DNA of 64,000 nucleotides. Source: Mizuhopecten yessoensis. Taxonomy: Eukaryota. How positions within the stretch are numbered: the first letter of the stretch is position 1; each line of letters starts with the position of its first letter. The translations under genes and the position numbers were made by a program. Under the pieces are notes generated by a model that was not told the origin of the DNA, did not search any database, and saw only the letters and a list, made by a program, of their open reading frames with translations. This document shows, piece after piece, positions 9,025-56,893 of this stretch. The stretch is taken from NCBI RefSeq assembly GCF_002113885.1, contig NW_018405126.1, positions 146,867 to 210,866 on the forward strand, in the 5' to 3' direction.

Positions 9025-12000
9025 TCACCCAAGAAAATTGAGGTAAGCTACTCTTTCCTCAGCCGAATCTCTGTCCTTGACCTGGACTTCTATCTCCGCG
9101 CCACCGAATGTAAACTGGGCGTCTGCTCCTCTATTCAGCCCTTTGCTGGTGTCGGGCATTTCAATTACAAGTGAACCAATACACTCACAACCCTCGTCAG
9201 TAACATACTTGGGCGATGGGTGGGGCGAAATGTAGATATTAAACCGCATCACTGTTTGAAAGGCGTGTACGACATAATAATGTTTGGTTTCTAAACTGTT
9301 CCATACAGGAAGAGACTGTCCTTTCTGTGCATGTACACTGAATATATCACCTATTAATTCTGTGCCATATGTAAACCTACTGATCCTTTCCGTGATCGTG
9401 TCTAGCTCATGACCGTTGATGACGGCACCTTTCAGCACAGCAAGGCCAGCCTCGTGTGGAATGACGAGACGCTTGTCCGGGAACTTGGCGGAAATTTCCG
9501 TCTGTAGTAGAAGACATTCCGAGTATCCGCCGACGAGGAGGATGGCCTGAGCCTGTTCTACCTCTGGGTGTTTCATCAGCTCTACCACGTGGTCAATAAT
9601 CTTCTGGACGGATTGTCGGAACATCGTTTGAGCTAGCTCAGACTTGACTCGCAGTCTATCCATCTTCCATGTGAGGTTATTTGAATACTTCTTGTTAGAG
9701 GATATACTTTCCTCGACGGTTTTATTTGGATGAATATCGGCAAAAGTGTCCATCAGACTGATTGGGAGAGTAAACGTAATTTTTGCATCAGTCGCTGATG
9801 AGATTGATCTTTTCTTAGTTTCAAAAGACCTTTGTAGCTCCAGGTAGTCTGCAACATGTTTTTGCTTGAAGTCGTTAAACACATCAGCTCCCAAGATTTC
9901 AGAAAGAAGCATTTCAAACTCCTTGTCTACCATGGTCCCGCCCCAGTCCCCTCCATTTGCCATGTACACCTCTTTCAGCTTCAGACCTGGCAGCACCTCG
10001 TGTACAGTGATATCAACGGTTCCTCCTGTAGTGTAAACAAGTAGAGTTCAATATATCACAGTAACAACTCGTAAGAATAAATCAAAAGAAACTCAATGTC
10101 AATATGATAAAAAAATCAATGCATAGTTCAATTGTCTGATAAAGCGCATCCAAGTCAATCAAATTGATTGAGATAAGAAGTCATTCATTTTGAATTCACC
10201 CATTTGATATCAAAATTATAAGTAAAATAAAAAATTGTTCAAAAGTACTCAATACTTTTTATCCCTGTCCAACCGCGGGCAAGGGTTAGTTAGCTCGCGG
10301 TACAATGATATAAACTACAGGGTTCAAATCCGTTGTATTGATAGTCTAACCGGTTTGGCAGTGGTTAGGGATCCCTAGTGGATTGTAACAATTCCTGTTT
10401 TTATCATGCTGGGTATTGATATATATTAAAATTTCACACTCGGTAAAAAGTGAATTTAAAAAGATTTTTAGATATTCGGGAAATGGTTTGTAAGCGAATA
10501 AATAATAGGATGTCATTATTGCACAATACAGCCGTATGTGACGAAAACAACGCCAATGGAATACATATATGGCAACAACGGTCAATATACACCATAACTC
10601 TAGTCTGTTATGCATTAATACATCGTTTAGGATAACACAATGGATCATCATATGAAAAATGAAATCAGAAAAGTCAAACGGCTGAGAAAATAAGCAAATC
10701 GTGCCTGACCAATCGGATTTCATCATCTCCATGAAATATTTTTTTTCTCTTTTCTAACTTTTCGTGACCTTAACTATTGGCCTTTGTGTTGAGCGTGCGT
10801 CAAGGCGAACAAAAGGAGTTCTGTCCGTTCCTATTCCGGTAATGCTGGTTATCGTTTCTATAGATACGGTATAACAACATAATTTAACCTTCATCTCCAT
10901 TAACTCTTACCACCAACATCCACTACCATGTATCGCGACCCAGGTCGAAACACCACCAGGTTGTCTCCCCCTTTTCCAACAGACATGTCTTTCAGCGGTA
11001 GGTATTTACAGAACATAGCAGCTGCCTCGGCTTCCAACGACAGAACGAGTTGATAGCCTGGGATACCAGCCTAAACAACGATATTATTATTGTTTTTGAA
11101 ATTTATAAATGCTCAAAACTCAATTTTAAATGCTTTTTATATAATTTTAAGGAGCTTTCAAATACATATGTTTACCATAACAACGAAAATGATATCACCT
11201 TAACGTTGACATGTTACATTTTTTAAGGGTGCATGTGACACGAGTCAGAAAATAATGTTGTGATATGTAAGAAGTGAAATACTTAATGTAGTGAAAGATT
11301 GTTGTAATGACGATAATTATACACATAAGATAGTAAATGTACTCGAAAAAAAGGTTATTGGTGATTACCTGCTGAGCGCATTCCCTCATGAATTGTTTTG
11401 CCCGGTCATTCCAAATAGCGGGCACTGTCAGGACCCATCTGACGTCAGACATCAGCAATTCTAGCCCCCTCTTCTCACAGGTACCAAGGAGATGGTCCTT
11501 CAGGTACTTTACTGCCTCCGCAAACACTTTCATTGCCAGCATTGGTTTCTGATTTTGTGCGTACAATTTCATGGATCTGGTGATATCCTAAAACATACGT
11601 TTTAACATATCTAATTAACATATCTAATTAACATATATAGTTAAGAGTTAATTAGGTTCAGTTGGATGGTTAATGTATCTTTGTTACTATCATGTATACA
11701 ACCAATGTAAATAAAGTACTTATTTACCTTTTGCTCATAAAGTGACATCTTAAAGCGTCTAAAAAAGAACCAGTCATGGTGCTTATCGTCGTCTATCAGC
11801 TTGGCGTACTTGTCTTCGGCTTCAAAACCAAACGTGTCGAAACTTTCGTCTGGTTTAAACAGAACGCACGTAGAGGTCTTTAGGGAAGCGAGATTTCCGG
11901 ATCCTGCTTGCCATACAAGTGTACTGATATTCAATGGATTTTTGGTATACTCCAGCCGTGATGAGAATGCGTACCCCGAGTAGGTTGTGCCGAAGTCCAA

Positions 12001-12401
12001 TTCTGCCACCAAAATGTATGGACTGTTCTTCAGGTCTCTTTTCTGTAATACATAACAACTTAACAACTTGATGGCTGTCAGCATAATATTTTTATTATAG
12101 TATGTTGGGTTTGAATATCAATCGGAATGTTTTATTGATGAAATATCTTTTAAAATAAAAATAACCGAGAACAACAACAACAAAAGTACTGAAGCGTTAA
12201 CTGTGTTCGTATGTCTCAATATCATAAATAGGATATTCTCCCCTTAAAATAGAAATGTAAGAACTGACACTTTCTCAGCGTTTTATGGATAGTTATATAT
12301 GTGTTAACTATCGAACCAGGTATCGGTAATGATAAAAGCAAGTTTATAGCATGACTCACCAGTATCCTTGGCTGTGTCTGCTGACGAACTTGTGACTCCA
12401 T
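9025..12401 (-). CDS. HSPA12: HSPA12-like atypical Hsp70, copy A (predicted 578 aa, 5 coding exons)
   Basis: Exons 12401-12360 (MESQVRQQTQPRIL), 12042-11728, 11587-11369, 11070-10911, 10025-9025. All introns GT-AG, phases consistent, total 1737 nt. Motifs LDFGTTYSGYAFS, WVLTVPAIW, DVGGGTVD, GGDWGG, LVGGYSE. Ends FLG* with no EEVD and no helical lid, as in HSPA12. Confidence 0.88.
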
Positions 12402-13530: not shown

Positions 13531-13567
13531 AGGTAAGGATACAATATAAACGTTGTGTGTGTTAATA

Positions 13568-13685
13568 AATACTACCTTAATAAGGAAGTAAAAACCCAGC
13601 TTGTTTAAAGCAATTTTATCAATGGTAATACTACCTTAACAAGGAAGTAAAAACCCAGCTTGTTTAAAGCAATTTTATCAATGGT
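13568..13685. promoter_or_regulatory. 59-bp tandem unit x2 in the putative promoter of copy A, each with an ETS-like GGAAGTAAAA core
   Basis: Direct repeat aatactaccttaa(t/c)aaggaagtaaaaacccagcttgtttaaagcaattttatcaatggt. GGAAGTAAAA also occurs at the equivalent place upstream of C (about 35781) and D (about 50004). Confidence 0.5.
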
Positions 13686-14090: not shown

Positions 14091-17000
14091 GCCATGTAAC
14101 ACCCGTCATAATGTCACCATTACAAAGAGTAACACCCGTCATGCTGTCCTTATTACAACATGTAACACCCGTCATGATGTCCCCATTACAATATGTAACA
14201 TCCGTCATGATGTCCTTATTACAACATGTAACACCCGTCATTATGTCCCCATTACAATATGTATCACCCATCATGATTGCCCCATCACAACATGTATCAG
14301 CCGTCATGATGTCTCCATCACAACATGTAATACCCGTCATGATGTCCCCATCACAACATGTATCACCCGTCATGATGTCCCCATCACAACATGTATCAGC
14401 CGTCATGATGTCTCCATCACAACATTTAATACCCGTCATGATGTACCCATTACAACATGTAACACCCGTCATGATGTCCCCATCACAACATGTATCACCC
14501 GTAATGATGTCCCCATCACAACATGTATCACCCGTCATGATGTCCCCATCACATGGAACACCCGTCATACTGTCCCTATTACAACATGTAACACCCGTCA
14601 TGATGTCCCTATCACAACATGACATGTAATACCCGTCATGATGTCCCCATTACAACATGTTACACCTGTCATAATGTCCTCATCACAACATGTAACACCC
14701 GTCATAATGTCCCCATCAAAACATGTAACACGCGTCATGATGTCCCCGTCACAACATGTAACACCCGTCATGATGTCCCCATCACAACATGTATCACCCG
14801 TCATGATGTCCCAATTACAATATGTATCACCCGTCATAACTGCCTCATCACAACATGTATCACCCGTCATGATGTCCCAATTACAACATGTATCACCCGT
14901 CATGATGTCCCCATCACAACATGACATGTAACACCCGTCATGACGTCCCCATCACAACATGTAACACCCGTCATGATGTCCCTATTACAACATGTAACAC
15001 CCGTCATGATGTCCCTATCACAACATGACATGTAACACACGTCATGACTGCCCCATCACAACATGTATCACCCGTCATGATGTCCCAATTACAACATGTA
15101 ACACCCGTCATAATGTCCCCATCACAACATGTAAATAATGTCCCTATCACAACATGACATGTAACACCCGTCATGACCTCCCCATTACAACATGTAACAT
15201 CCGTCATGATTTCCCCATTACAACATTTAACATTTGTCATGACGTCTCCATTACAACATTTAACACCCGCCATAATGTCCCCATCACAACATGTTACACC
15301 CGTCGTAATGTCCCAATCACAACATGTAACACCCGTCATGATGTCCCCATTACAACATATGTCCCAATCACAACATGTAACATCTGTCATGATGTCCCCA
15401 TTACAATATGTATAACCCGTCATGATGTCCCAATTACAACATGTAACACCCGTCATGATGTCCCCATTACAACATGTAACACCCGTCATAATGTCCCTAT
15501 CACAACATGACATGTAACACCCGTCATGACGTCCCCATTACAACATGTAACATCCGTCATGATGTCCCCATTACAACATGTAACATTTGTCATGACGTCT
15601 CCATTACAACATTTAACACCCGCCATAATGTCCCCATCACAACATGTTACACTCGTCATAATGTCCCAATCACAACATGTAACACCCGTCATAATGTCCC
15701 CATCACAACATATATCATCACAACATGTAACACCAGTCATGATGTACCCATTACAACATGTAACATCCGTCATGATGTCCCCGTTACAACATGTAACATT
15801 TGTCATGACGTCTCCATTACAACATGTAACATTTGTCATGACGTCTCCATTACAACATGATGATGTCCCCATCACAACAAACACCAGTCATGATGTCCCC
15901 ATTTCAACATGTAACACCGGTCATGATGTCCCCATTTCAACATGTAACACCGGTCATGATGTCCCCATTTCAACATTTAACACCAGTAATAATGTCCCCA
16001 TCACAACAAACACCAGTCATGATGTCCCCATTTCAACATGTAACACCGGTCATGATGTCCCCATTTCAACATGTAACACCGGTCATGATGTCCCCATTTC
16101 AACATGTAACACAAGTCATAATGTCCCCATCACAGCATGTAATACCCGTCATAACGCCCCATCTCAACATGTAACACCCGTCAAGATGTTTCCGTCACCA
16201 CATAACACCAGTCATGATGTCCCCATTTCAACATGTAACACAAGTCATAATGTCCCCATTACAATTTGTATCACCCGTCATGATGTCCCCATTACAACAT
16301 GCATCACCCGTTATGATGTCCCCATCACAACATATATCAACCGTCATGATGTTCCCATCACACCATGTAACACCCGTCATGATGTCCCCATTACAACATG
16401 TAACACCAGTCATGATGTCCCCATTACAACATGTAACACCCGTCATAATGTCCCCATCACAACATGTAACACCCGTCATGATGTCCCCATCACAACATGT
16501 AACACCCGTCATGACTGCCCCATCACAACATGTATCACCCGTCATGATGTCCCCATTTCAACATGCATCACCCGTTATGATGTCCCCATCACAACATGTA
16601 TCAACCGTCATGGTGTCCCCATTACAACATGTAACACCAGTCATGATGTCCCCATTACAACATGTAATACCCGTCATGATGTACCCATTACAACATGTAA
16701 CACCCGTCATAATGTCCCCATTACAACATGTAACACACGTCATGATGTTAGCATCAAAACATGTAACATCTGTTACGAGGTCTACGTACCGCATCGAACA
16801 CTTGTTATGATGAATCAAACACATGGAACCCCCGTCATGATGTCCCCATTACAACATGTAACACACGTCATAATGTCCCCATTACAACATGTAACACCCG
16901 TCATGATGTCCCCATCACAACATGTAACCCCCGTCATGACTGCCCCATCACAACATGTATCACCCGTCATGATGTCCCCATTACAACATGCATCCCCCGT

Positions 17001-18890
17001 CATGATGTCCCCATCACAACATGTATCCCCCGTCATGATGTCCCCATTACAACATGTAACACACGTCATAATGTCCCCACTACAACATGTAACCCCCGTC
17101 ATAATGTCCCCATTACAACATGTAACACCAGTCATGATGTCCCCATTACAACATGTAACACCAGTCATGATGTCCCCATTACAACTTGTAACACCCGTCA
17201 TGATATCCCCATTACAACATGTAACACACGTCATAATGTCCCCATTACAACATGTAACACCCGTCATAATGTCCCCATTACAACATGTAACACCCGTCAT
17301 GATGTCCCCATTACAACATGTAACACCCGTCATAATGTCCCCATTACAACATGTAACACCCGTCATGATGTCCCCATTTCAACATGTAACACCAGTCATA
17401 ATGTCCCCATCACAACATGTAACACCCGTCATAACGCCCCATCACAACATGTAACACCCGTCATAATGTCCCCATCACAACATGTAACACACGTCATAAT
17501 ATCCCCATTACAACATGTAACATCTGCCATGATGTCCCCATCACAACATGTAACACCCGTCATAATGTCCCCATCACAACATGTAACCCCCGTCATAATG
17601 TCCCAATCACAACATGTAACACCAGTCATAATGCCCCCATCACAACATGTAACCCCCGTCATAACGCCCCATCACAACATGTAACACCCGTCATCATGTC
17701 CCCATCACAACATGTAACACACGTCATAATGTCCCCATTACAACATGTAACACCCGTCATAATGCCCCCATTACAACATGTAACACCCGTCATGATGTCC
17801 CCATCACAACATGTATCACCCGTCATGATGTCCCCATTACAACATGTAACACACGTCATAATATCCCCATTACAACATGTAACATCTGCCATGATGTTCC
17901 CATTACAACATGTAACACCCGTCATAATGTCCCCATTACAACATGTAACACACGTCATGATGTGAGCATCAAAACATGTAACATCTGTTACGAGGTCTAC
18001 GTACCCCATCGAACACATGGAACACCCGTCATAATGTCCCCATCACAACATGTAACATCTGATATGATGTCCCCATCACAGCATGTATCACCCGTCATGA
18101 TGTCCCCATTACAACATGTCAAATCCGTCATGATATCTCCGTCATAATATGAACATCCATCATGATATCTCCGTCATAATATGAACATCCATCATGACGT
18201 CTCCGTAACAACATGTTACACCCGTCATGATTTCTCTGTCACCATATATAACATCGTTATGATGTCTTCGTCACTACATTACAACACTCGTCATGTTGTC
18301 CCCTTCACAACATGTAACACCCTGCATAATGTCTCGATCATCATGAGTAACACTCGTTACGATGTCTCCGCCACAACATCCGCACCCATAAAAAATCTGC
18401 TGTCACAACATTTCATATCCGTCAAGATGTCTCCCCAACCATGCATAACAACGTAATGATGTAGTCCGTTACAACATGTAACATCCGTCAAGATGTTTCC
18501 GTCACCACATATAACACCCGTCATGATGTCTCCGTCACCATATATAACATCGTCATGATGTCTCTCGTCACTACATGTAACACCCATCATGATGTCTCCG
18601 TCAATACATGTAACACCCGTCATGATGTCTCCGTCACTACATGTAACACACCTCATGATGTCTCCATCACAACATGTAACACCCGTCATGATGTCTCCGT
18701 CAATACATGTAACACCCGTCATGATGTCTCTCGTCACTACATGTAACACCCGTCATGATGTCTACCGTCACTACATGTAACACCCGTCATGATGTCTCTC
18801 GTCACTACATGTAACACCCGTCATGATGTCTCTCGTCACTACATATAACACCCGTCATGATGTCTCTCGTCACCATATGTCATATTCGTC
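14091..18890. repeat. 33-bp tandem satellite array 1 (about 4.8 kb), consensus ACAACATGTAACACCCGTCATGATGTCCCCAT(C/T)
   Basis: Visible 33-bp period giving 11-aa pseudo-ORF repeats (TTCNTRHDVPI, QHVTPVMMSPS, TCCDGDIMTGV), with frequent frame-breaking indels. Confidence 0.97.
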
Positions 18891-20411: not shown

Positions 20412-23400
20412 TCAACCAAGAAAATTGAGATAAGTTACTCTTTCCTCAGCTGAGTCGCTGTCCGTAACATGGACTTCTATCTCCGCACCACCGAATGTAA
20501 ACTGGACGTCTGCTCCTCTATTAAGCCCTTTGCTGGTGTCAGTCATTTCGATTACATGTGAACCAATACACTCACAACCCTCGTCTGTAACATACTCGGG
20601 TGAAGGGTTGGGCGAAATGTAGATATCGAACAATAGCTTTGTTTGAAACGGTTCTGTGACAGAATAATGGCGGGGTTTTAAACTCTGCCACATAGGAATA
20701 GACTGTCCTTTCTGTGTATATACACTGAATATATCATGACAACGTGCCACACCTCCAATCACAACATACTTTTCCCTTGGATGTTTCCCCGGAATAAATA
20801 CTTTCGCAACATTTGTACCATATGTATATCTACTGATCCTTTCCGTGATTGTGTCTAGCTCATGACCGTTGATGACGGCACCTTTCAGCACGGCCAAACC
20901 AGCCTCGTGTGGAATGACGAGACGCTTGTCCGGGAACTTGGCGGAAATTTCCGTCTGTAGTAGAGGACATTCCGAGTATCCGCCGACGAGGATGATGGCA
21001 TGGGCCTGTTCTACCTCTGGGTGTTCCATCAACTCTACCACGTGATCTATAATCTTCTGGACGGATTGTCGGAACATCGTTTGAGCTAGCTCAGACTTGA
21101 TTCGCAGTCTATCCATCTTCCATGTGAGGTTATTTGCATACTTCTTGTTAGAGGATATACTTTCCTCGACGGTTTTATTTGGATGCATGTCGGCAAATGT
21201 GTCCATCAGACTGATTGGGAGAGTGAACGTAATTTTTGCATCAGTCGCTGATGAGATTGATCTTTTCTTAGTTTCAAACGACCTTTGTAGCTCCAGGTAG
21301 TCAGCAACATGTGTTAGCTTAAACTCGTTAAATACATCAGCTCCCAAGATTTCAGAAAGAAGCATTTCAAACTCCTTGTCGACCATGGTCCCGCCCCAGT
21401 CCCCTCCATTTGCCATGTAAACCTCTTTCAGCTTCAGACCTTCCAGCACTCCGTGTACCGTGATATCAACGGTTCCTCCTGTAGAGTAAATCAGTAGAGC
21501 TCAATATACAACAGTAACAACTCCAAAGAATAAATCAAAACAACTAAATGACAATATGATTAAGAAAAACTAAAACAAAAACATAGTTCGATTGTGTGAT
21601 AAAGAACACCTAATTCAATGCTATTGCCTATCCGAGGCAATAGCATTGAAGAAGCCAGTCCTTTTAAATTTATCCATTTGATATCAAAACTATCAATAAA
21701 ACATGATAATAATTATGCATAAGTACTAAATACGTTTTATCCCTGTCCAAGCGCGGTCAAAACACCAGAAAAATTCACGACGGTTTTTTGTTCCTTCTTT
21801 CCCTTAATTTAATTTATGGTTTAAATGTAGCGCGACCTGACCAGAATACTTCTGTTGAGGTACATCTGGTTGGTTAGCTCAGTTGGTTAGCTCGCGGTAC
21901 AATGATCTAACCTGCACGGTTCAAATCATGCGCTTCCCCGTTGTATTTTTTTTTTTAAATTTTATCTCTTTTGTTTTTTCATTAAAGTCCCGCAATGTAT
22001 CGGTTTCTTTTCAGAAAGTGTTTTCTGAGCTATAGTTGTGTCCAATTAAAAAATCCAATTAACAGGTCAACGAGTGACAGGGTTTGACAGCGGTTAGGGG
22101 ATCCTTTAGGTGATTGTGAGATAACGATACCTGTTGTTATAATACTAGATATTGATATGTATTCAAATTTCACACCCAGTGCAAAGTAAAGTTGTTGTTT
22201 TATTTTAGATATTCGAGAAACGGTTTGTAAGCAAAGGATAAATTATAGAATGGCATAAGTGCACAATACAGACTTATGTGACCACAATAAATCAAATTGA
22301 ATTAATGGTGAATATATACTCCACAACAATAGTCTTTTATGCGTTAATCTTTGTAAAGTCATAACATCATAACATTATAACATTAGCTATAGTACCTGAT
22401 CAATAGGACTTCTATATAACCATGATATTTTTTCTCTCTTTTCTAATTCTTGGTGGTTTCGTAACATCTCACTTGGCGAAACCTCACCTTTCGGCCTTGG
22501 TGATGAATGTGCGCCAGGGCCAGCAAAAGGAGTTCTGTTCCAATACCCACCGCGACAAAGCTCTAAAATTGCTACTTGTTCACACGTACCTATACTAGTA
22601 ATGCGGGTTATCGTATTGATAGACACGGTATAACAATATAATTTAATAATTCAACCGTTATCTCCATTAACCCTTACCACCAACATCCACCACCATGTAA
22701 CGGGACCTAGGTCGAAACACCACCAGGTTGTCTCCCCCTTTTCCAACAGGCATGTCTTTCAGCGGTAGGTATTTACAGAACATAGTAGCCGCCTCGGCTT
22801 CTAACGACAGGACGAGTTGATAGCCTGGGATACCAGCCTTAACAAAGATATTATTAATTTTCATTGAAATTTAGACTTGCTCAGAATTCGGTCTTAAATA
22901 CATTTCATCTAATTTAGAGGAGTTCTCATATACATATGTTTACCATAACAACGAAAATGGTATCACCTTAACGTTGACATGTTGCGTTTCCTCAGGGTTC
23001 ATGTGACACGTGTCAGAAAACATTATTGTGATATGTAAGAAGTGAAATACATAATGTATTATATATATGACTTTTATTGTTTTATTATGACAATATACAT
23101 ATGAGATAATAAAAGTACTCGAAGAAAAGCCATTGTCGATAACATGCTGAGCGCATTTCATCCGGGTTCATTTGACAAAAGTCAGAAAATAACACTTTGA
23201 TATGTAAAAAAATATCTTCTAATTGTAGTGACAGATTCTTGTAATGACGATATACACATTAGATTATAAATGTACTCGAAGAAAGGGCATTGTTGACTAC
23301 CTGCTGAGCGCATTCCCTCATGAATTGCTTTGCTCGGTCATTTCAAATAGCAGGCACTGTCAGGACCCATCTGACGTCAGACATCAGCAATTCTAACCTC

Positions 23401-23523
23401 CTTTTCTTACAAGTACCAAGGCGATAGATGGTCCTTCAGATACTTTACTGCTTCTGCAAACACTTTCATTGCCAGCATTGGTTTCTGATTTTGTGCATAC
23501 AATTTCATGGATCTGGTGATATC
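20412..23523 (-). pseudogene. HSPA12: HSPA12-like copy B, pseudogene (exons 4-6 only; terminal exon ORF intact)
   Basis: Exons 23523-23301, 22837-22678, 21478-20412. Exon 4 is 223 nt versus 219 nt in paralogs (4-nt insertion near 23422) and has TGG>TGA at 23343-23345. The ATG exon and exon 3 are absent, replaced by a LINE fragment. Confidence 0.92.
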
Positions 23524-24229: not shown

Positions 24230-25575
24230 GATGATACCTCCTTATATGGTCTCATTGAGGGAGACAGGCAAGAATGTGCTAATATATTAAATGATGATCT
24301 AAGGAAAATTTTAATCTGGGCTAGACAATGGGGAATTATCTTTAATCCAGATAAAACTGTAGCCCTGCTCTTCTCGAGGCGGGTTGACTCTGAGACACTG
24401 CATCCTAACCTATGTTTTGATGAATCACCAATTATTAATGTTTCTAATCATAAACACTTAGGTTTGTTTTTCAACAGCAAGGCTATTTGGTCTTACCACA
24501 TAAACTATATATACGAAAAAGCTTATAAAAGAATTAATATACTTAGAATGTTGAAATACAAAATTGATAGAAAATCCCTTGAAACTATATATATCACATT
24601 TATACATCCAATTCTGAAAAATGCAAATATTATATTGGCAAACTGCACGCAGCATGAATGCAGCGTCTTGGAGTCTATCCAACTAGAAGCAGCACGTATT
24701 ATTTCAGGGTTAAGACGTGGAACAAGTCATTTGCATCAAAATATTACTTTTTATAAAATATATAATAAGAACATGTCTATGATATAATTCAACCGTTCAT
24801 TAATAATAATGTTGAATATTATCATCTTCGCCACAATATAATTTTTGATGTTCCTATACCAAGAACTCAGTTATATAATGCCAGTTTTTTCCCGAAACTG
24901 ATGTCTGAATGGAATATTCCAACTTGCCTGTATCCCACAATGACATCCATTGGAGCTATAAAAAGAGATTTTTTACACTCAGATGAAATGGATTCTCAAC
25001 CCCAATGTACTAATGTAAAATGTACTTAAATACAATGGTGATCGAACATTTTATGTTACCTTTTGTCAACTTAGAAACTGTGCCAGAAACCTGAATTCAG
25101 ATCTATTTGAATCTCACCTAATTGATACCCCAGCCTGCTTATGTAGTTCTCCTGTTGATAATTGTGATCACTTCTTCTTCCATTGTACTCTGTATTCTAA
25201 TCAAAGGCAAATTCTCCTGAACTCCATTTCTGCTCTTAATGACATTATTCCATTAAATACTCAGACTTTTCTTTATGGATGTCGAAGACTCGATATCAAT
25301 ATGAATATAAGGATTTTGGAGATGGTTCAGAGATTCATTAAATATACTAGACGCTTTTACTAGATTACACTTACTCATTTATCTTTTTTCACATGACTTT
25401 GTTGTGTGGAATGATACCAGTACATTATTATACTATGTGTTATCCACCAGCAACATTTTAGTTGCCATTTTATAATGCCATAAATATTCTGAAATGAAAA
25501 ATGAATACATGTAAAATTTGACTGAAACAAATATGGTGGAGGTCATATATATAATTTAAAATATACATTATGTAA
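24230..25575 (+). mobile_element. 5'-truncated, degenerate non-LTR retrotransposon (CR1/L2-group reverse transcriptase C-terminal part plus 3' UTR)
   Basis: Translation DDTSLY...LNDDLRKILIWARQWGIIFNPDKT...HKHLGL...W..HI...KRINILR...Y..FI.P.L...LESIQLEAARIISG, later CLCSSPVDNCDHFFFHC and TRRFY* at about 25363. Stops and frameshifts present. 3' boundary approximate. Confidence 0.88.
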
Positions 25576-40490: not shown

Positions 40491-40882
40491 ACGATCAAAT
40501 GCGTGATGCACAAGTCTTTATTCGTAGAGATGTCGATCATGCAAGGCCCTACAACAAATCGAAATCTGAGATGTACTATATCCTTACATGTAGCTTACTT
40601 GTAGCTTTAAATATTTTTTTTCGTGTTCACCTGACAGGGTCGTAACTTCTTTTATCATATGAATACCGTGTTATGCAATGTCAAAACCATCACATAAATA
40701 ATGTTTATGTAACCTGTGTAATATCACTCCGGAAATGACGTCACAATCGAATAGAAACAATCAATGTGATGTCACGTCATTGTGAAGCGGACACAGTATT
40801 CATCGTTTCAGACGCGGCCAAGTGCAAAATATTCGTTTCAGATCACAATTATACAGTTTACTTTGTATCACATGATACAAAT

Positions 40883-42333: not shown

Positions 42334-42828
42334 TCAACCAAGAAAATTGAGGTAAGCGATTTGTTCTTCAGCTGACTCTCTGTCCTTGACCTGGACTTCT
42401 ATCTCCGCACCACCGAATGTAAACTGAGCGTCTATCCCTCTATCCATTCCTTTGCTGGTGTCGGGCATTTCAATTTCAAGTGAACCAATACATTCACAAC
42501 CTTCGTCTGTCACATACTCGGGCGATGAGTTGGTCGAAATATAGATTTCGACATTCGTACTTGTTTGAGACGGTGATGTGACGTTGTACTTAATAGATTC
42601 TAAACTCTCCCATACAGCTATAGCCTCTCCTTTCGTTGCATGTACACTGAATATATCACCACAATACGCTTTACCGTTTCCTTGTATTTTACGTTTTTCC
42701 ATTGGATGTATTTCATGAATAAAGTCTGTCACACATTTTGTGCCATATGTAAACCTACTGATCCTTTCCGTGATTGTGTCTAGCTCATGTCCATTGATGA
42801 CGGCACCTTTCAGCACGGCCAAACCAGC
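42334..42828 (-). pseudogene. HSPA12: HSPA12 fragment E: isolated 3' part of the terminal exon (164 aa, essentially the substrate-binding domain), frame open
   Basis: AGLAVLKGAVING...YLNFLG*. Its upstream sequence (42830-43330) is the 3' flank of copy D, which is repeated again downstream at about 41872-42333. Confidence 0.85.
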
Positions 42829-43330: not shown

Positions 43331-46300
43331 TCAACCAAGAAAATTAAGGTAGGCGATTTGTTCTTCAGCTGAATCTCTGTCCTTGACCTGGACTTCTATC
43401 TCCGCGCCACCGAATGTAAACTGGACGTCTGCTCCTCTGTTCAGTCCTTTGCTGGTGTCGGGCATTTCAATTACAAGTGAACCAATACATTCACAACCCT
43501 CGTCTGTCACAAACTCGGGTGAAGAGTTGGTCGAAATGTAGATTTCGACATGCGCACTTGTTTGAGACGGAAATGCGACATTGTACTGAATAGATTCTAA
43601 ACTCTCCCATACAGCTATAGCCTCTCCTTTCGTTGCATGTACACTGAATACATCATCACAATAATCTTTACCGTTCCTTTTCATTATACTTTTTTTTTCA
43701 ACTGGATGTATTTCAGGAATAAAGGGTGTACTACATTTCGTGCCATATGTAAACCTACTGATCCTTTCCGTGATTGTGTCTAGCTCATGTCCATTGATGA
43801 CGGCACCTTTCAGCACAGCAAGGCCAGCCTCGTGTGGAATAATGAGACGTTTGTCCGGGAACTTGGCGGAAATGTCTGTCTGTAGTAGAGGACATTCCGA
43901 GTATCCGCCGACGAGAAGGATTGCCTGAGCCTGTTCTACCTCTGGGTGTTTCATCAGCTCCACCACGTGGTCTATTATCCTCTGGACGGATTGTCGGAAC
44001 ATCGTTTGAGCTAGCTCAGACTTGATTCGCAGCCTATCCATCTTCCACGTGAGGTTATTTGCATACTTCTTGTTAGAGGATATTTTTTCCGCCACGGTTT
44101 TATTTGGAAGAATCTCATCAAAAGTTTCCATCAGACTTATTGGGAGAGTAAACGTAATTTTTGCATCGGTCGAGGACGAAATTGATCTTTTCTTAGTCTC
44201 AAAAGACCTTTGTAGCTCTAGGTAGTCTGCAACATGTTTTTGCTTAAACTTATTAAATACATCAACTCCCAAAATCTCGGAAAGAAGCATTTCAAACTCC
44301 TTGTCTACAGTGGTCCCGCCCCAGTCCCCTCCATTTGCCATGTGAACTTCCTTCAGCTTCAGACTCGGCAGCACCTCGTGTACAGTGATGTCAACAGTAC
44401 CCCCTACAATGTGAACAATTATAATAAAAACAAATATAAAAACGAATGAGACTAAAAGCAGAATAACTAATTGGCAACGCGATTAAACAAGAAAGTCTAA
44501 CTAAAGCATAGCTTGATACAGCACCAACCATAGTTGTTTATATTTGTCCCAAATATTTGTGAGCCAAGCAACTGAAATATTAACGCGAAACTCAAAAAAT
44601 ATGATTTAATCCTGAAACCAAGATCCCTGCAAAATATTCAAGAAATGTAACAAGACATGAGCAAGGAAAAAAATGTTAAAAAATAAACGAATCTGTACGT
44701 CTTACACCGAGGATTAATAGGTGTTTTTATTTATCTTAAGTACCCACAAATGGACATATACTATGTATAACTATAACTATAAATGTATATGTTACTATCA
44801 AAAAAACTAAGCTCAGTGGTTATCTATCTAGCTTGTTTTAAAAAAAATGTTTTTTTGTAAGTAGCTGACAAAAAACAAATTTCCATGTGTCCTGTTATTT
44901 TTACCCAAACAAAGAAGTTGCATTTGGCCCCATATTAGTAACATGACGTCGGTATAGAAATTAAAATCGACAATAAACTACATGTATTTCATTTCATATC
45001 AAAACAACAAATAAACATGATAATATTTCAAAAAGTACTAAAATCCATGTTCATTTTTTTTCTCTTAGTAGAATGGCTCACATTAGTGTTTTTTATTTAA
45101 AAATAGTCAGTCTAACTTTCTGAAGATCGGTGTCAAGCTCGGCCAGGGAATTCTATTTAAAAAAAGGAAAAGGGATTTAAAAAACTGAACTGCTATTGAA
45201 TTTCATTAAACACTATAAACGAATTTAGTGTATCATCGTGCCATAGTTTTTGTTTTGCAATAATTATTTGGTGCTGCAATGGAGAGTACATTATTTTGAC
45301 AAATATCGAATCATAGATAAAACTTGAATAGTGCTTGACATTGCAGTGGAAAACTTACCTCAGTGACATAAAGTTCTTACGAGGTTAAAACATTTTTACA
45401 TGTAAACGAAATGAAGTGCATCGCATAGCATCACATGCGGAGATTTTAAGGTTCAAAAGGCCCCTAAAAGATGCTGTAGTCACCTATAATTTCAACCGTC
45501 TGAAAAGTCATGTTCAAAGACATCAACTCAAAATCGGAACTTATATATGTTATTTGTACAAAAAATACATAGCCAGGTTAACGTAGTCAAAAATTAGGCA
45601 TTAAGGCTGATGTCTTCATAAAAATAGCTCATTGGACTTATAACATGTCAACATATTTTGCGATCAAACTGAGAGCTGAGAAACGACCTATAATTTAGGG
45701 TTTATGTATATACCTAGGTCATGCGGAGCTTTATTTCTCTTCTACTAGCTGTTGAGAGGAATTTCGACCTCAAATAAAGGTAGATGTTGCAGTGCAAAAT
45801 CACTAAAATCATAGTAAAATCGCCTAGTAATACATTTTAACAATTTATAAATAAGAAAAAAAATGCTAAGTAACCTTGATCGATAAATGAACTTTAGATG
45901 ATGTGCCATTTGATAACATTCTGTGATTATATGAATGCGCTAGATATGTTATAAACATTGAAGCTGAAAAATACAATAATGTTTATAACAAGTCTAGCTC
46001 GTTTATAAAAACATTCAATGTTAAAAAAGGACATTTTATATGAAGTTTAAGTAGTGTTTATGGTCAAACGTTTTACACGGTAAAATATGTTACGTGGACG
46101 TTTTACTATGATTTTGTACTTTCCCATAGCAACAATCATCTTCTTGTGAGGCCGGTATACCTCTCCACACACAGTTAATTGAGGCTTATGTACATAAGCC
46201 AGGTTTAAATGGACAAATAATGTTTCTATTAATACTAGTCAAGCCTCGATGGACTAGTCTGCAACATTAACCTAAACATCGTGTATATATATGTATGTCA

Positions 46301-49300
46301 GTGACAATCATGATCAGTAGGTTTTTCATATAGGAACATCGACCGTATACATAACCAGGGCCTGAGCGGTCAATGAAGAGAGTGACCGGTCATGTGTTAG
46401 CTAATCGCTGTCTGATTGGCTTAGAGGATTCCTGATAGCTAGCTGGTCACTTTTTCCCCAGCGTCCGGAGCTAAAAGACCAATCTCATAAGTTTTATATT
46501 TCGGGTTTACCACCACCACCCCAGTCACCTACCTGTAAATATGAACGACAGCGGTTTTTAATTAAGATAGTAAATTTATATGAGTTTAATGTACGATATC
46601 ATATAATGATATCAGGTGTGAAACAACAAATACTTGGGCAATCTCAGTTGATACATATGAAGTATAGTTGATAGCCTTGTTTTCCCCAAAAATTGGATGA
46701 TATATTTATTTCACAATATTCAGATATTAATGGAAATTATTCTATTACATAATATTGGGATACAACAACACAGGCGGGAGCAATGTATCCCAAGAGTTAC
46801 AGCCAGTCTAAGTTGTCCCATTTAATGCTATAACCTTTATATAAGTTACCCCAACATCAGACTGGAGCAATGTAACCAAAGAGTTACAGCCAGTCAGACT
46901 GGAGCAATGACTGGAGCAATGTAGCCAAAGAGTTACAACCAGTCTGGGTAAAACATAAGATTATATAAAGTTAAACATATAAGACGCTATTCCTCTTCGG
47001 GTCTGGCCTGCAATGCACCCAAAGAAGTAGATAAGGTGGAAACGGCTCCACCACTACTTATTACATCCTCGCACTCTATTTAGTGTAACAGCAAAGCCTG
47101 CACACAAATAGAGAACCATGTAATTGCCAGCTTAGTCGAGGAATAGCGTCGACATTCTATACCGTCACTGAGTTTGCCCCAGAAATGCCAATTTAATAAA
47201 GCTCCGCGTGACCAAGGTATATAAATGATCTTCAAATAAATGGCATTTCGTAACATTCAGTTGGGTCGCTTAGGAGATTGACATGTTATAAATCTGGTGA
47301 GTAACTTTTACATTACATCAGCCTTAATGACGTATTTTTATTTCGTTATCCTGGTTATGTACGTTTTTAATAGCTCATGTACAAGTTCATTATATTTAAA
47401 TTACAAATATATATCCCGATTTTTGATAAGGGCATTTGAATATGACTTGCCAGGGGGTTGAAATTTAGGGTTGCTATTATATCTGTTAGGGGGCTTGAAC
47501 CTTAATCATGAAGGTAATACGACAGTCTAAAGAGAATGCGACTTTTTCTGCCACGTTGACCAATACACTCACCCTAGGAGACCACCTATACTAAGAACCT
47601 GCTGTGGTAATACTACCATTTTCAAAGCTCTCCGTTCTCATATAAATTAACCTGTATTTAACTTTGTTACTTATTGTGATTTATTGTGATATGTTTTGCT
47701 GTAATGTTTCATTTTGTAAAGTTAAAACAAATAAATAGTAAACAATAATAACAATGATAACAAATTGAAATGATGTTTCCTGTTATATGTTATAAACATG
47801 CTACATGTTCATTTATGGCACCATGAAAAGTCGTACGTGTATGTATGAGTGTACGCGAGACACACATATGCAGTACTTCATATAGTACGATTGATATCTT
47901 TATGTATGCGGACAACATAATTAACGCTTCGTCTCTACATGGTCTTACCCCCAACATCCACCACCATGTATCGCGACCCAGGTCGAAACACCGCTAAGTT
48001 GTCTCCCCCTTTTCCAACAGTCATGTCTTTCAGCGGTAGGTATTTACAGAACATAGCAGCAGCCTCGGCTTCTAATGACAGGACGAGTTGATATCCTGGG
48101 ATACCAGCCTGAAGAAAGATATGATTACTGTTATTGAAATTTATGATTGCTTAGACTTATGGTCAACGCGTTTGATATAACTCCATTGAACTTTCATAAT
48201 GTCATACAAACGGCACTGATTTCATCTCGATTTTGACATGTAACATTTCCTCATGGTTCACGTGACAAAAGTCAGAAATGAATATTGTAATTTTAAGAAA
48301 TGAACTTCTTATTGTAGTATAACATTGTTGTAATTACGATTCTCACATTAAATAATAAATGTTCTCGAGAAAAAGTCATTGTCGATTACCTGCTGAGCGC
48401 ATTCCCTCATGAATTGTTTTGCTCGGTCATTCCAAATAGCAGGCACTGTCAGGACCCATCTGACGTCAGACATCAGCAATTCTAGCCCCCTCTTCTCACA
48501 GGTACCAAGGAGATGGTCCTTCAGGTACTTTACTGCCTCCGCAAACACTTTCATTGCCAGCATTGGTTTCTGATTTTGTGCGTACAACTTCATGGATCTG
48601 GTGATATCCTAAAACATACATTTTAACATATCTAATTAACATATCTAATTAACATATATAGTTAATAGTTAATTTGGTTAAGTTGGATGGCTCATGTATC
48701 TTTGTTACTATCATGTATACAATGTAAATAAAGTACATATTTACCTTTTGCTCATAAAGTGACATCTTAAAGCGTCTAAAAAAGAACCAGTCATGGTGCT
48801 TATCGTCGTCTATCAGCTTGGCGTACTTGTCTTCGGCTTCAAAACCAAACGTGTCGAAACTTTCGTCTGGTTTAAACAGAACGCACGTAGAGGTCTTTAG
48901 GGAAGCGAGATTTCCGGATCCTGCTTGCCATACAAGTGTACTGATATTCAATGGGTTTTTGGTATACTCCAGCCGTGATGAGAATGCGTACCCCGAGTAG
49001 GTTGTGCCGAAGTCCAATGCTGCCACTAAAATGTATGGGCTGTTCTTCAGGTCTCTTTTCTGTAATGAACCAGTGAAAACAATTCAATATTTTTATTTTC
49101 AAATGAACATGTTATGCATGAAAATCTATCAGAGTATTTTATTTTATTGATGAAATAGGTTTTCAATCGTTATGTTTTGTACCCGTGTCACAATTGATAG
49201 AAATGCTTTCTCCTCAAGGGGTATGAGCTTAAAAACTGAAAAGAATCCATTCATCTATTCATATTAATATTAAGCTGACTACCAAACAACATGTAGAAAA

Positions 49301-49367
49301 AAACCAAGACGTTATCATGACTCACCAATATCCTAGGCTGCGTCTTCTGAGAAACTTGTAACTCCAT
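43331..49367 (-). CDS. HSPA12: HSPA12-like atypical Hsp70, copy D (predicted 602 aa)
   Basis: Exons 49367-49326 (MELQVSQKTQPRIL), 49059-48745, 48608-48390, 48108-47949, 44403-43331 (1809 nt). GT-AG introns, no disruption seen. Confidence 0.9.
45230..47830. mobile_element. Old foldback-like DNA element with long degenerate inverted arms in the last intron of copy D
   Basis: Colinear inverted matches: tcatcgtgccata (about 45233) / tatggcaccatga (about 47815); taaggttcaaaaggcccctaa (about 45447) / ttagggggcttgaacctta (about 47490); cattaaggctgatgt (about 45599) / acatcagccttaatg (about 47315); ttataacatgtcaa / ttgacatgttataa; tatacctaggtcatgcggagctttatt (about 45709) / aataaagctccgcgtgaccaaggtata (about 47195). 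No transposase ORF. Confidence 0.65.
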
Positions 49368-51387: not shown

Positions 51388-54300
51388 TTATCCTAGAAAG
51401 TTAAAATAGGCATTGGTTTCCTTCTGCGTGTGCATGTCGAACGCTGCGACTTCGATCTCCGCTCCACCAAACGTTAATACCACATCCACTCCCCTATCCA
51501 ATCCTCTTGTCGTGTCGGGCATTTCAACAATCAGCTCTCCGATACTTTCAACGCCCTCCTCCAAAACGTACATTGGATTCGTATCTTTGGTTGTGAACAA
51601 CCGCACTGGGAGCGTTTTCTGATCTCGTGAAACTACCTTATAGCGTTGTGATTCGCCTCTGAGGCCGACAGGTACTGCATTCCCAACCCTCACGTGTGTA
51701 CAGAAAGCATTGGCACAGAGTGGCATGCCATCTTCTCCTAAAACCATTAACCGCGGATCATGTAATCCAAGTACGAAAGGTACACTCGCACCAACGCCAT
51801 AGGTAAGTCTGCTGATCCTCTCGGTAACAGCTTCTAGCTCATGGCCATTGATGACAGCTCCAATGAGTACTGCAAGTCCAGCTTGGTTTGGAATTACGAG
51901 CCTTTTATTTTGAAACGTTGTTGATAATTCGTTATGAAGAATAGGACATTCGGCGAATCCACCTACTAAGATGATGGCGTCGATGTCCGCTACCTCTGGC
52001 TTCTGAAGGAGCTCCTTGACATGATCTATGATCTTGCGGACAGACGGTTCAAACAAAGTTTTAGCAATATCTGATTTAATGCGCAGCTTGTCACTTTTCC
52101 AGGTCAGATTATTTGCATAATCTTTACTGGTTGCCACTCTGTCTTCTACGGATTTTCCTGGATTTATCTCTTCAAAGATATCAAGCAAACTGCATGGGAG
52201 TGTGAAGGTTATCTTCGAGTCAGAAGAAGAATGTATGCATCTCTTTTTGGTTTCAAAACTTCTTTGAAGTTCCAATAGATCTGAAACATTCTCACGTTTG
52301 AATTTCTCAAAAACATCATGTCCCAAAAGGTTGACCAGCAACTTTTCAAATTCTGTGTCTACCATTGTTCCTCCCCAATCTCCACCATTTGCCATGTGGA
52401 TTTCCTTCAGCTGCAGCCCGTCCTCAACCTGATGGACCGTGATATCGACAGTTCCTCCTGAAGAAAACAAATAGCACATTTGAAGATGTACAGTTCATAC
52501 AACCTATTCAAACTGATAATGGAAGTGAAGTTAAGGTGCAACTGCACGCTGATTGTGGACATTTTAACAAACGTCAGGATAATCAACAAACTCCTGATAC
52601 CTCAATCAATAACAACATCGACGATGCACACAGCTACCACTCATGAACTATCTCCAGACACAAGGAGTTCAGTCATTTATGATTATTCCTAAATTTACTC
52701 AGAAAAAGTTATGCCATGTTTCAGTATCGCTAAAATACTCTAAGATACATCATAATGATTAACATGTGAACTTTCAGTAAAGATAACTTAATATACAATG
52801 TCGTTAAAATAACAAATATTGTTTTAATTAGCTATTATCCAGAATTATTCGATAGTTTATTAAAAGTGAAACATTATCTATGCGATCTTTCTGATTATTT
52901 GTGTAAGTTTTAATGATTTTAATTGAAACCTACTTTCAACAATAAAAACGTCTATTTTTATTTCAATTATGATCATTCTGCATCTGTCGACATAATAAAC
53001 GGACATCTATATGTTGATGGTAGTCAGGGAGGGATAAGTTGGCGAATTACGTGATAAACACACATATTTTAAGTAACATTCATATATGGCAAAAATAGAA
53101 ATAACAAAAATTCAGTAAAACATCTCTCTCAATCAAACTGTTGGCATTATAAAGGGGTTCGGTGATATGTTGACATATATACGAAACGAGACATTAGAAT
53201 ACATTGCATGCCGACGTTAAACGTGATTACAAATGACAATTGTCGTTATATAGATTTCTTAAAAATAATTATCGAGGTTAGTGTCTGTGTTGTATTGTTT
53301 AATCCTCGATATCCATGGGTTACGCTCACTTTCACTCTCTGCACCCCTGGAATATGTGATAGCAAAATCGAAGGGTCAGTTTGCACCGCATTGTGGATGA
53401 GACAAGAAGGCTAGTTTGATCATTTGATGTACTTTAAAAGAATCTCGTGGTCGCATAACGGTAAAACGTATTGGCTTTGAAGTCGGGAGTCGCGTCTCTG
53501 TAATCTTCAAAGGACAAGTATCAAATAGCCAGCAAAGAGCGAAAGTGAGCGTAACCCCTGGATGCCGAGGATGTTTGTTTATAATCTGTAAGTTATTTCT
53601 TTCCACACTCGGTGAAGGTGAAGATGGAGCTTCCCTTTTTGATCTTTTCTGCCCCTGTTTGTAAACAAATAGGGGATATCGAATTTAAAAATATAGACTT
53701 TATTAATTTTACAAAAATTATGAAATAAATAAATTTCAACTCATATGAATCACTTTTCTTGGCCCAAATGTTAGCGCGCGGGAGTCTTTATGTGGGAGGA
53801 AACCGGAGTACCTGGAAAACCCCACGTAGGGTATATCTGATTACGTCTATAACGAATACCAGTAACACGTACCACCGACATCCAGCACCATGTATTTGGC
53901 CCCCGGTTTGAAGATAGAGATGTTGCCAGCTTTGCCGACAGTCATATCACTGACTGGGAGGTATTTGCAGTAGAGAGCGGCAGCTTCAGCCTCAAGCGAC
54001 ATTACCAGTTGTGGACCTGGTATCCCAGCCTGTCAAAAAATAATAATCAAAAGATACATAAAAAATAAATATCATTACTCAAACAAACCAACATTGACAA
54101 CGTCAACTTAGAGGTTATAAAATACATTCATAAATGCAAAACTAAGATTTTATTTGTATTTATAAAAGACATTGATTTCGTTCCAGTAACGCCTTGCTTA
54201 CAAGGTGACGTCATACCAACATACTCCTACGCTAATTGTAACTACTATTGTACAACTTTATATCAATGTATACAAAAAGTTTGTTAGTGTATTACAGGTA

Positions 54301-56893
54301 TGTATTTGTATCTATAATTATCGCACGAACGTTTGAGTTGATATACAAACGTGTGTGTTTAATTGATTGCTTTATTATTTTAAAACACGGTCAGGAACTG
54401 TATCAATATCTGTCATCTGTCATTCTGACAAACTTGGCTCCATCGGGCAAAGTTGACGATGATTTCTAATAAGTACTATTGCAAATAATCATAGTACAAG
54501 TGGTATTGATAAACATATTTCATTTGATGTAAAGTGGGTAAGATATATGTTCTTTGTTTAACATATTCAGCACAAGTCGTTGGACAATTCACCTTTTCAG
54601 CACACTCTCTCATGAACTGCTTTGCCTTGTCGCTCCAGATAGCCGGCATAGTCAGAACCCATCGTATGTCTGACATCAGGACCTCTGTGCCTCTCTCCTG
54701 GCATTTTGCCAGTAAATGCTCCTTCAGAAATCGGATCGAGCTTGAAAACACATTCATTGCCAGCATATCCCTTCCATTCTGATCGCTTATCTTCATTGTC
54801 CTTGTAATATCCTTCAGAAGAAAATTAGCATATTTCTGATATTGGTTTGGTGTATGACTTCACAATCACTACTTAATTAATGTAAAGACTCATACGGGAT
54901 TTATGTACATACACATTTAATGATGCTATTTTTTTTTAGCAATTTCAGTGGTGAAAATTATGAAATATTTAACTGGAACATTGAGCCGAACGTTAAGTAA
55001 TAGGAGCCGAGGAGATACCACAACAGTAGGAAACACCACAATAAATAAATAAACAAATAAGAAACTTGAGCCAACACCAGGTGTTCTGAATGAGTCGCTC
55101 CTGTTACAAAGACGGTCCCTGTGCTATAGCTTTGGTATGAATAATTTGTCTGTTATAGATAGTTTGTGAAAACCACAAAGCTAAAGCCCTGATCAAAGAT
55201 ACGTATTAAGGTTTTTGCTCCTTTTTACCTTTCTTATATATTGAGAACAATATACATATATCCCTATGAGTGTCATTACCTGTTCGTATAGGCTCATTTT
55301 GAATCGTCGAAAAAAGTACCAGGACTGATGTTTCTGTTGGTCGAGCAGGTCAGCGTACTTATCTTCTGCATCGAATCCAAAAGAATGGAAACTGCCATCT
55401 GGTTTGAACAAAATGCACGTGGAAGTCTTCAAAGACAAAAGGTTGCCTGATGCTGCAGTCCAATTCATGTTTGACACCTTTAACGGTGACCGTTTATACT
55501 CGTACTGTGTCGAAAAGGCGTAACCAGAGAAAGTTGTTCCAAAGTCGATAGCAGCTACCAGGATATATGGTGTATCTTTCATATGTTTCTTCTGAAAGCA
55601 AATTGAGAACATTTCTTTAGCTACCGTGTGTTCAATTTCTGTGCTCCAGGACCTGCTGCGATATTTTAAATGAGCAAGACAGACACAATCTAACAAAAAG
55701 CGTCACACACAAGAATAATTCACAGTTTGTTATTGGTACAAAACAATCGAAAACATGTAATACCATCGTTACAGAATTTGTATAATCCTGAGACATACAC
55801 GATAACTGTATATGTTATTCTACCACGTCTCCGACGTAACGACACTTTTCATTTATTAATAACTATAGAATGTGTGTGCATCGCTCCCCCAAAAAACTCC
55901 CCCGCAAATGCAAACAAGCGAGCCACGGGACTGGTTTCTTTTGTCGATTGAGGGTACACACATTTAATTTCGTATGTATTTGAAGATTTGCTAGCAGGAA
56001 ACAAAACAGTTCCTATTTCACCTCTATTTGAAACTTTGAAGCTCATGGTCAGAATGTTTCGTCGAACTTTCCGCGAAGGTGACTTCAAACAATATTTGTT
56101 AATCTGTCAAACGCTGATTTCACGCGTTTGAAAGCGATGTGGGTATATTGGTCATTTTGATAGATTCAAATAAACATCCGGTATAATGCACGCCGTCGGT
56201 GCTTATTGTTCATCGCCTGTCGACCGAATGGACACTGAAAATGCAAAATATTCCCCAAATATATAACCAGGTGTAGGATCCCTGTCCCATTGCACTGTGG
56301 TTTATTCTATATATAGTAACTTCCCCTCGTTTTGGATAAAATTGTAGCACAGTTGCGCATCGACTCTTCAATTGGCCAGTTAGCTCAGTCGGTTAGAGCG
56401 AAAGTATAACAATTTGAAGTCAATGCATTGATACCATTTCTGGCAGCCTCACAGGGATCTTAAAATCGACAAACTAGGTCACTGTCCACTGAGTCAGAAA
56501 TGATGAAAATGCACAGCTTGTTGTGAAATGAAGACATAAAAACATCCCGTTTACACGCGCAAAATACAGCTTAATTTTGATTTTTGGATTATCCAGATAA
56601 ATTTGCTTATTAAAGGGTGTATGGAAACTGAGGTAGACACGAAAAAGACTTCCATTACATTGAATGTGGTAGAATAGATATAGTCAAAATATGTTTGTAT
56701 ATTATGGTGGAAAATAGGTCCCGGAATTCCAAAATTGTCAGGCCAGGTTGTAGATTCAAAACGTAATACACACATACTCTCAAATAAGGTACTTTACCTG
56801 GATGCCAAGCCGTGTCGCGTCTATGCACCCGGGTGGTTTGTATTTAATCTTCGGATCCGTCTTTAGTTTAGGTAATGTCTTCTTGCTCGCCAT
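51388..56893 (-). CDS. HSPA12: HSPA12-like atypical Hsp70, divergent copy F (predicted 617 aa)
   Basis: Exons 56893-56798 (MASKKTLPKL...RLGIQ, less certain), 55591-55280, 54811-54593, 54029-53873, 52457-51388 (1854 nt). Motifs AAIDFGTTFSGYAFS, WVLTMPAIW, LDVGGGTVD, LVGGFAE. Same intron positions as A, C and D. Confidence 0.87.
53301..53573. mobile_element. MITE (about 270 bp) with about 40-bp terminal inverted repeats
   Basis: atcctcgatatccatgggttacgctcactttcactct / agagcgaaagtgagcgtaacccctggatgccgaggat. Flanks attgttt and tttgttt resemble a 7-bp TSD with one mismatch. Confidence 0.75.
53790..53828 (-). mobile_element. SINE central-domain relic
   Basis: tgtgggaggaaaccggagtacctggaaaaccccac is the reverse complement of the GTGGGTTTTCTCCGGGTACTCCGGTTTCCTCC-type conserved core of metazoan tRNA-derived SINEs. 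Confidence 0.55.
56373..56422 (+). pseudogene. tRNA-derived 5' half (tRNA pseudogene or SINE head)
   Basis: ggccagttagctcagtcggttagagcg matches a tRNA acceptor/D-arm (A box). The 3' half is decayed. Similar relics near 21868 and 29904. Confidence 0.45.

Follow-up and report, generated by a model that had tools for sequence, protein, structure and literature searches.

Does a tandem array of chaperone-like genes supply more of one protein, or a set of proteins that differ in what they bind? The question is raised by a 64,000-nucleotide stretch of the scallop Mizuhopecten yessoensis genome (hereafter, the window), which holds six HSPA12-like units, all on the minus strand and in the transcription order F, D, E, C, B, A. 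Six same-strand HSPA12 units had been reported in an initial annotation made from the sequence alone, and that observation was confirmed in full. Units A, C, and D are genes already annotated by RefSeq, and expansion of the family is known too. What appears to be new is positive selection localised to loops of the beta part of the substrate-binding domain (SBD-beta), together with a tail duplication linking D and E. We read the locus as a lineage-specific tandem HSPA12 array in which a constant ATPase engine is joined to binding-loop residues driven apart by selection, and we assign this reading a probability of roughly 0.6.

The critical features lie in the last coding exon. Its first 221 codons show 91-97% amino-acid identity within the set A-D, and they are followed by two radically different segments, V1 (alignment codons 222-250, right after the TYGT motif) and V2 (codons 265-290). 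Alignment of A-D thus upheld the earlier description of a nearly identical start of the exon with two radically variable stretches after TYGT. On the minus strand, V1 and V2 occupy positions 20813-20733 and 20690-20613 in B, 28859-28779 and 28736-28659 in C, 43738-43652 and 43609-43532 in D, and 42738-42655 and 42612-42535 in E.

The fold of the variable domain was predicted from alignments and structural models. Protein-level searches used the database proteins P0002, P0003, and P0121, which are identical to or consistent with our gene models; exons were analysed separately. P0002 matched Pfam PF00012 (E = 2e-11), and phmmer aligned it with DnaK residues 104-403, through the linker, placing the residues around TYGT on DnaK 394-403 (strand beta1). 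The AlphaFold model of P0002 (predicted local distance difference test score, pLDDT, 89.9; predicted template modelling score 0.89) has an all-beta C-terminal domain, and its best Foldseek matches were the two-domain structures of DnaK and BiP (about 600 aligned columns, E = 1e-24). Modelled alone, the C-terminal 164 residues gave a pLDDT of 88.3, and this domain model matched the substrate-binding domains (SBDs) of mortalin (Z 13.4, root-mean-square deviation 1.8 over 111 residues), human Hsp70 (Z 12.8), and DnaK (Z 10.1); structures outside the Hsp70/Hsp110 superfamily reached Z 5.7 at most. According to these models, the last 140 residues are an Hsp70 substrate-binding beta-sandwich without the helical lid. 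The lid is considered absent because the protein stops a few residues after the last beta strand, in agreement with the definition of HSPA12 as lid-less in PMC13580251. An Hsp70/actin-fold ATPase domain and an SBD-beta without an alpha-helical lid, the two features by which HSPA12 membership was judged, were both found, and the best database matches carry HSPA12A/B-like names (names of bivalve homologs alone).

Like vertebrate HSPA12A and HSPA12B and the bivalve HSPA12 proteins, the scallop proteins combine an Hsp70-type ATPase, with its phosphate-binding and adenosine motifs, with the absence of a lid. Like the canonical SBDs of DnaK, Hsp70, BiP, and mortalin (Z 10-13.4), the modelled domain is an eight-stranded beta-sandwich following the linker, with TYGT on the strand that corresponds to DnaK beta1. 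One bivalve paper (PMC10939072) states that HSPA12 has no substrate-binding domain; in contrast, the scallop HSPA12 C-terminal domain is predicted here to have the SBD-beta fold. Unlike canonical Hsp70, the scallop proteins lack the lid and have a loop L1,2 that is about 25 residues longer, forming a structured hairpin. V1 begins at the position of DnaK L1,2 and contains this insertion of about 25 structured residues with a conserved skeleton; V2 corresponds to beta3-L3,4-beta4. The phmmer alignment, the AlphaFold models, and the structure search therefore all support the earlier placement of the variable segments at the peptide-binding loops of Hsp70. In unit A, an in-frame loss of 66 nucleotides at about 9355/9354 (within 9346-9360) has removed the entire expanded L1,2 insertion; its loop is back to roughly canonical Hsp70 length, and the gene is still intact and annotated.

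Selection on the last exon was first gauged from pairwise omega, the ratio of non-synonymous to synonymous substitution rates, by the Nei-Gojobori method. Over codons 1-221, pairwise synonymous divergence (dS) was 0.16-0.40 and omega 0.12-0.19. Over V1 and V2 combined, omega was 0.85-1.07 in the older pairs, 1.5 in A-B and A-C, 2.3 in B-C, and 0.9 in D-E. The values in the older pairs are also those expected if V1 and V2 were weakly constrained surface segments drifting at omega of about 1, with multi-nucleotide mutations mimicking positive selection. This neutral explanation, which we judge unlikely, is further favoured by the codon events separating B and C (about 15 replacement and 5 silent, near the neutral ratio) and by a comparison of 64 bivalve homologs, in which few segments vary more than these two. 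Against it, other segments that vary across the family, for example P0002 residues 341-360, are far less changed within A-D.

Codon site models bear on the same choice. We implemented these models ourselves and fitted them by maximum likelihood to A, B, C, D, E, and the homolog from Ylistrum. A class of positively selected codons was preferred by likelihood-ratio test (LRT) whether M2a was compared with M1a (LRT 40.8, p = 1e-9), M8 with M7 (LRT 60.9, p = 6e-14), or M8 with M8a (LRT 42.7, p = 3e-11). Under M2a this class comprised 4.8% of codons with an omega of 6.3 (about 5-6 across models). The LRT was 19.9-39.4 in four subsets of the data (intact genes only, C-terminal part only, gap-free columns only, and paralogs only), and the largest value in 14 simulations under the fitted null was 3.7. 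All codons with a posterior probability above 0.9 fell within V1 or V2: 223-226, 237, 238, 242, 271, 277, and 284. Even very young copies are separated by two or three nucleotide differences at several of the selected codons, and double and triple instantaneous changes were therefore added to the model. M2a was still preferred over M1a, with an LRT of 19.1 (p = 7e-5) for the six sequences and 10.4 (p = 0.0055) for the paralogs only, a result that neutral drift does not readily accommodate; in favour of drift, M1a with multiple hits fits as well as M2a without them.

A second line of evidence comes from the two young pairs. Between B and C, 20 of 123 positions differ in V1 and the next 14 codons, compared with 5.7% in the introns (p = 4e-5); between D and E, V1 divergence is 21%, compared with 10.9% in the duplicated spacer. 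V1 has diverged 2-3 times as much as introns or spacer in both of these independent pairs, and codons 223-226 carry differences of two or three nucleotides in each, both of which count against weakly constrained drift. Synonymous divergence is not raised in V1 and V2, which argues against a mutational hot spot. In three other young HSPA12 clusters of the genome, omega was 0.54-1.64 in the corresponding segments and 0.21-0.35 outside them. The selected residues would line or cover the client-binding cleft, and the paralogs may bind different clients or ligands.

Several considerations weigh against the reading of a constant engine with selected loops. To our knowledge, no HSPA12 protein has been demonstrated to bind peptides. 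Region-wide omega in V1 and V2 is about 1 and not clearly above it. The codon models are our own implementation, checked by a small simulation only, and the sequences to which they were applied comprised no more than five paralogs with a single, distant outgroup (dS above 1). Allowing multi-nucleotide mutations takes away about half of the likelihood gain, and the null then fits much better. When the site test was repeated on contig C3762, which carries an independent cluster of young copies, the outcome was non-significant (LRT 5.1), with codon 226 as the sole candidate. The assignment of residues to the cleft comes from sequence alignment and the order of strands and not from coordinates. 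Finally, a 2026 review (PMC13580251) describes the function of HSPA12 as unknown and the reason for its expansion to tens of genes in bivalves as unclear. Codons with omega above 1 were nonetheless concentrated at the predicted binding surface, as a diversifying repertoire should have them; given the few sequences, the signal halved by multiple hits, and the non-significant C3762 cluster, we consider a constant engine with a tip under diversifying selection to be supported with caveats.

The array resembles the expanded bivalve HSPA12 subfamily in general, in which tens of copies per genome lie in tandem clusters; 89 HSPA12 genes were counted in oyster (PMC11268181). For selection on bivalve HSPA12, the searchable papers give whole-gene Ka/Ks of tandem pairs only (PMC11268181) and no site-level analysis; unlike in those papers, the fast-evolving sites described here are localised to two loop segments of the SBD. 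The SBDs of canonical Hsp70 are highly conserved, whereas those of the scallop array are diversifying. Two reports (PMC6835236, PMC10279657) describe the C1q-domain and Toll-like receptor families of bivalves as showing tandem expansion with positive selection at the presumed binding surface. The scallop array would share with them a lineage-specific tandem expansion and a concentration of selection at such a surface. The members of those families, whose ligand classes are known, act as receptors or as secreted lectin-like proteins, whereas scallop HSPA12 is a predicted ATPase-driven, chaperone-like protein.

The 5' exons have a different history. Five coding exons with GT-AG introns were recovered on the minus strand in each of A, C, and D. 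Unit A is a complete gene at 9025-12401 (exons 12401-12360, 12042-11728, 11587-11369, 11070-10911, and 10025-9025), and its spliced model equals P0003 exactly. Unit C, also complete, lies at 28458-33091 (exons 33091-33050, 32851-32537, 31549-31331, 30868-30709, and 29524-28458) and equals P0002 exactly. Unit D, complete at 43331-49367 (exons 49367-49326, 49059-48745, 48608-48390, 48108-47949, and 44403-43331), encodes 602 amino acids, the same length as P0121, and P0001 agrees with it over exons 1-4. At 35644-35691 (minus strand) lies a short upstream coding exon that has a single occurrence in the window. RefSeq isoform X1 of gene C (P0122) includes it, as does gene A in the original annotation of the genome (P0123), A lying 23 kb farther downstream, beyond C and B. 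This exon is a leader common to the two genes or else an artefact of annotation.

Exon 2 of these three genes is a gene-conversion tract of low dS (11728-12042 in A, 32851-32537 in C, and 49059-48745 in D, all minus strand). Its dS among the paralogs was only 0.046-0.063, while against Ylistrum it was 1.2-1.4, like the other exons; compared with the constant part of the last exon, Fisher tests gave p = 2e-5 for C-D and p = 4e-4 for A-D. Exon 3 had a dS of 0.068 in A-D, and of 0.23-0.26 in A-C and C-D. The tracts stop where intron homology stops. As judged from these sequence patterns, gene conversion homogenises exons 2-3. The initial annotation had described the whole ATPase half as homogenised; this holds for exons 2-3, whereas exon 4 and the first 220 or so codons of the last exon are kept alike by purifying selection. 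Homogenisation was rejected for exon 4 and the last exon, where dS is ordinary (0.16-0.40). The mosaic tracts reported between copies are likewise present in the 5' exons, with none in V1 or V2.

Conversion within an array that also contains truncated copies invites comparison with systems in which pseudogenes act as donors, such as the chicken immunoglobulin V pseudogenes, the variant surface glycoprotein genes of trypanosomes, and pilS of Neisseria. The scallop locus resembles these systems in having truncated copies beside expressed genes and gene conversion in the array. B and E had been proposed as possible silent cassettes, copied by gene conversion into A, C, and D, and they do keep open frames and distinct versions of V1 and V2 in an array where conversion is active (exons 2-3). 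We nevertheless hold this proposal to be very improbable. Unlike in the donor systems, conversion in the scallop array homogenises the constant 5' exons, no donor patches were seen, and one of the supposed donors (E) is transcribed, so that it is not silent at the RNA level. The grouping ((A,(B,C)),(D,E)) is backed by 25 of the informative sites in the last exon, the alternatives by 8 (scattered) and 2. These site patterns, from the one haplotype examined, revealed no B- or E-type patches or tracts in V1 and V2 of A, C, and D. Beyond the window, the genome contains no close copies of A-E and no donor for the differences in V1, the best matches being at most 50% identical.

The open frames themselves (354 codons in B and 164 in E) were considered as evidence of selection and rejected, as chance alone can account for it at the divergence observed: given the number of substitutions in B, no stop arises in about 0.3 of neutral histories. 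The claim that both copies retain stop-free, distinct variable domains thus stands as description, the frames being open and the segments distinct, but the openness is not significant.

Unit B (20412-23523, minus strand) is disabled as a stand-alone gene and retains only exon 3 (23523-23301), exon 4 (22837-22678), and an open last exon (21478-20412). It is a contiguous 4.35-kb duplicate of C with 93.8% identity, the homology beginning in intron 2; in exon 3 of B, 4 nt have been inserted and there is a TGG>TGA change. At the expected place of its promoter and exons 1-2 lies a dispersed repeat resembling a long interspersed nuclear element (24231-25471, plus strand), and homology to the regions upstream of A and C resumes beyond it, at position 25574 on the B copy's side. 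This repeat had 42 matches among the 40 scored of 494 first-look candidates, with 84-93% identity. Its copies begin at varied query positions and most end at 1241, which indicates variable truncation at one end. Pfam gave no match for the open reading frame at 24464-24787 inside it, and the repeat was recognised by the distribution of its copies. Outside V1 and V2, replacement changes number 8 and silent changes 14 on the branch leading to B, a departure from neutrality (p = 2e-4), from which it follows that purifying selection acted on the last exon of B over the greater part of its history. Either the loss of a complete B is recent, or its last exon has some other use.

One such use is suggested by unit E (42334-42828, minus strand), which consists of the last 164 codons and a stop. 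It is the downstream copy of a tandem duplication of about 1 kb, by which D 43830-42829 matches 42830-41873 at 86.9%; the duplication begins inside the last exon of D and takes in its 3' flank and the spacer. RNA contigs from four studies cover the last exon of D, the spacer, and E without a break and at similar depth. Because the contigs are continuous from D through E in all four data sets, E is part of the D transcript. Most bins of intron 4 of D have no coverage, and its removal by splicing (joint 44402>47948) is seen in the RNA contigs from runs X1 and X2. This transcription evidence covers D and E; A and C are known as RefSeq models. Within intron 4, at 46800-46999, RNA contig depth was 215-505 in all four runs, far above that of the exons, with loose ends and an odd joint (46918/46871) in the same stretch, which is probably an abundantly transcribed repeat or a source of small RNA.

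E is either 3' untranslated sequence or an alternative terminal coding segment. In the latter case E, and perhaps B, would allow the same ATPase to carry either of two binding domains, an arrangement that we regard as possible while leaning against it. RefSeq isoform X2 (P0001) joins exons 1-4 and the first part of the last exon of D to E; residues 437-601 of P0001 match E at 99.4%, and three splice placements fit. The similar RNA depth over D, spacer, and E with a mostly empty intron 4 also speaks for an alternative tail, as does purifying selection on the B branch, although B cannot be translated from a start of its own. On the other side, no D-to-E splice joint was listed in the RNA contigs of the four runs, which cannot resolve a joint within the stretch shared by D and E, where the GT-AG joints that come into question are located. 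The implied intron is exactly one repeat period, so that a deletion allele or template switching by reverse transcriptase would give the same product. The E branch outside V1 and V2 carries 8 replacement and 7 silent changes, indistinguishable from neutral (p = 0.08), and a C-B isoform is not annotated.

The age of the array follows from comparison with Ylistrum balloti, which keeps a single gene (P0004) between an F-like gene and a G protein-coupled receptor (GPCR) gene, where Mizuhopecten has A-E. The array of A-E is therefore lineage-specific and arose after the split of the two scallop lineages. One ancestral gene would have been duplicated into A, B/C, and D, with the 1-kb partial duplication that gave E coming afterwards. 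Unit F (51388-55696, minus strand) is an older paralog, detected by tblastn, with about 55% amino-acid identity to A-D; its exon matches lie at 55591-55280, 54814-54581, 54032-53871, and 52458-51391, with the stop codon at 51390-51388, and its model is without a mapped first coding exon. On the other side of the array, an intact single-exon rhodopsin-family GPCR gene (3507-5174, plus strand; Pfam 7tm_1, E = 9e-22) has a 7tm_1 counterpart at the same place beside the HSPA12 gene of Ylistrum balloti, and synteny is conserved. At least 64 HSPA12 C-terminal domains are present in the Mizuhopecten genome. The cluster continues past the high end of the window, with further C-terminal domains at G000:C1799:212320-212814 and 223528-224022 that are 50% and 41% identical to C; the latter is on the opposite strand.

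Minisatellites with units of 33/34 bp separate the units of the array, with arrays upstream of A, B, and C. Tandem Repeats Finder located a 33-bp minisatellite between B and A (14093-18864) and, together with upstream homology, sister arrays at 26429-26917 and 36430-40491 that flank the duplicated units. The array may have been built by unequal exchanges for which these minisatellites provided the sites. The block at 36430-38233 is the reverse complement of 38231-40491, with a head-to-head junction near 38232, and the arrays have a strong GC skew and many long spurious open reading frames in several frames. A 59-bp tandem repeat upstream of A (13568-13685, 2 copies) and of B (25795-25971, 3 copies), with 97-98% matches, marks an upstream edge common to the duplicated units. 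Upstream of F are two adjoining 22-bp tandem arrays of different units, at 57483-59455 (90 copies) and 59565-60459 (40 copies).

The preferred reading, of a constant ATPase engine with selected binding loops, has the following parts. Purifying selection (omega 0.12-0.19) preserves the ATPase domain along with the beta-sandwich core, and gene conversion adds the homogenisation of exons 2 and 3. Some 10-17 codons in the two loop segments change recurrently, outpacing synonymous sites and introns. If the paralogs do differ in their clients, the array would represent a germline-encoded collection of chaperone-like binders with one common engine. A broader proposal, that bivalve HSPA12 arrays in general are germline recognition repertoires in which the terminal binding segment is swapped (the own tail of D for E, possibly C for B), we advance only tentatively and think quite improbable. 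If true, it would account for the retention of tens of HSPA12 genes in bivalves. The analogy with immune receptors, also drawn in the initial annotation, concerns a putative function and would extend to these proteins only by resemblance. The locus offers a natural experiment: the insertion in the loop is missing from A, most differences between D and E fall in their loops, and B and C are separated by 14 amino-acid changes in about 60 residues. If the clients, toxins, or microbial products that are bound vary from paralog to paralog, the expansion of HSPA12 would represent breadth of recognition rather than dosage.

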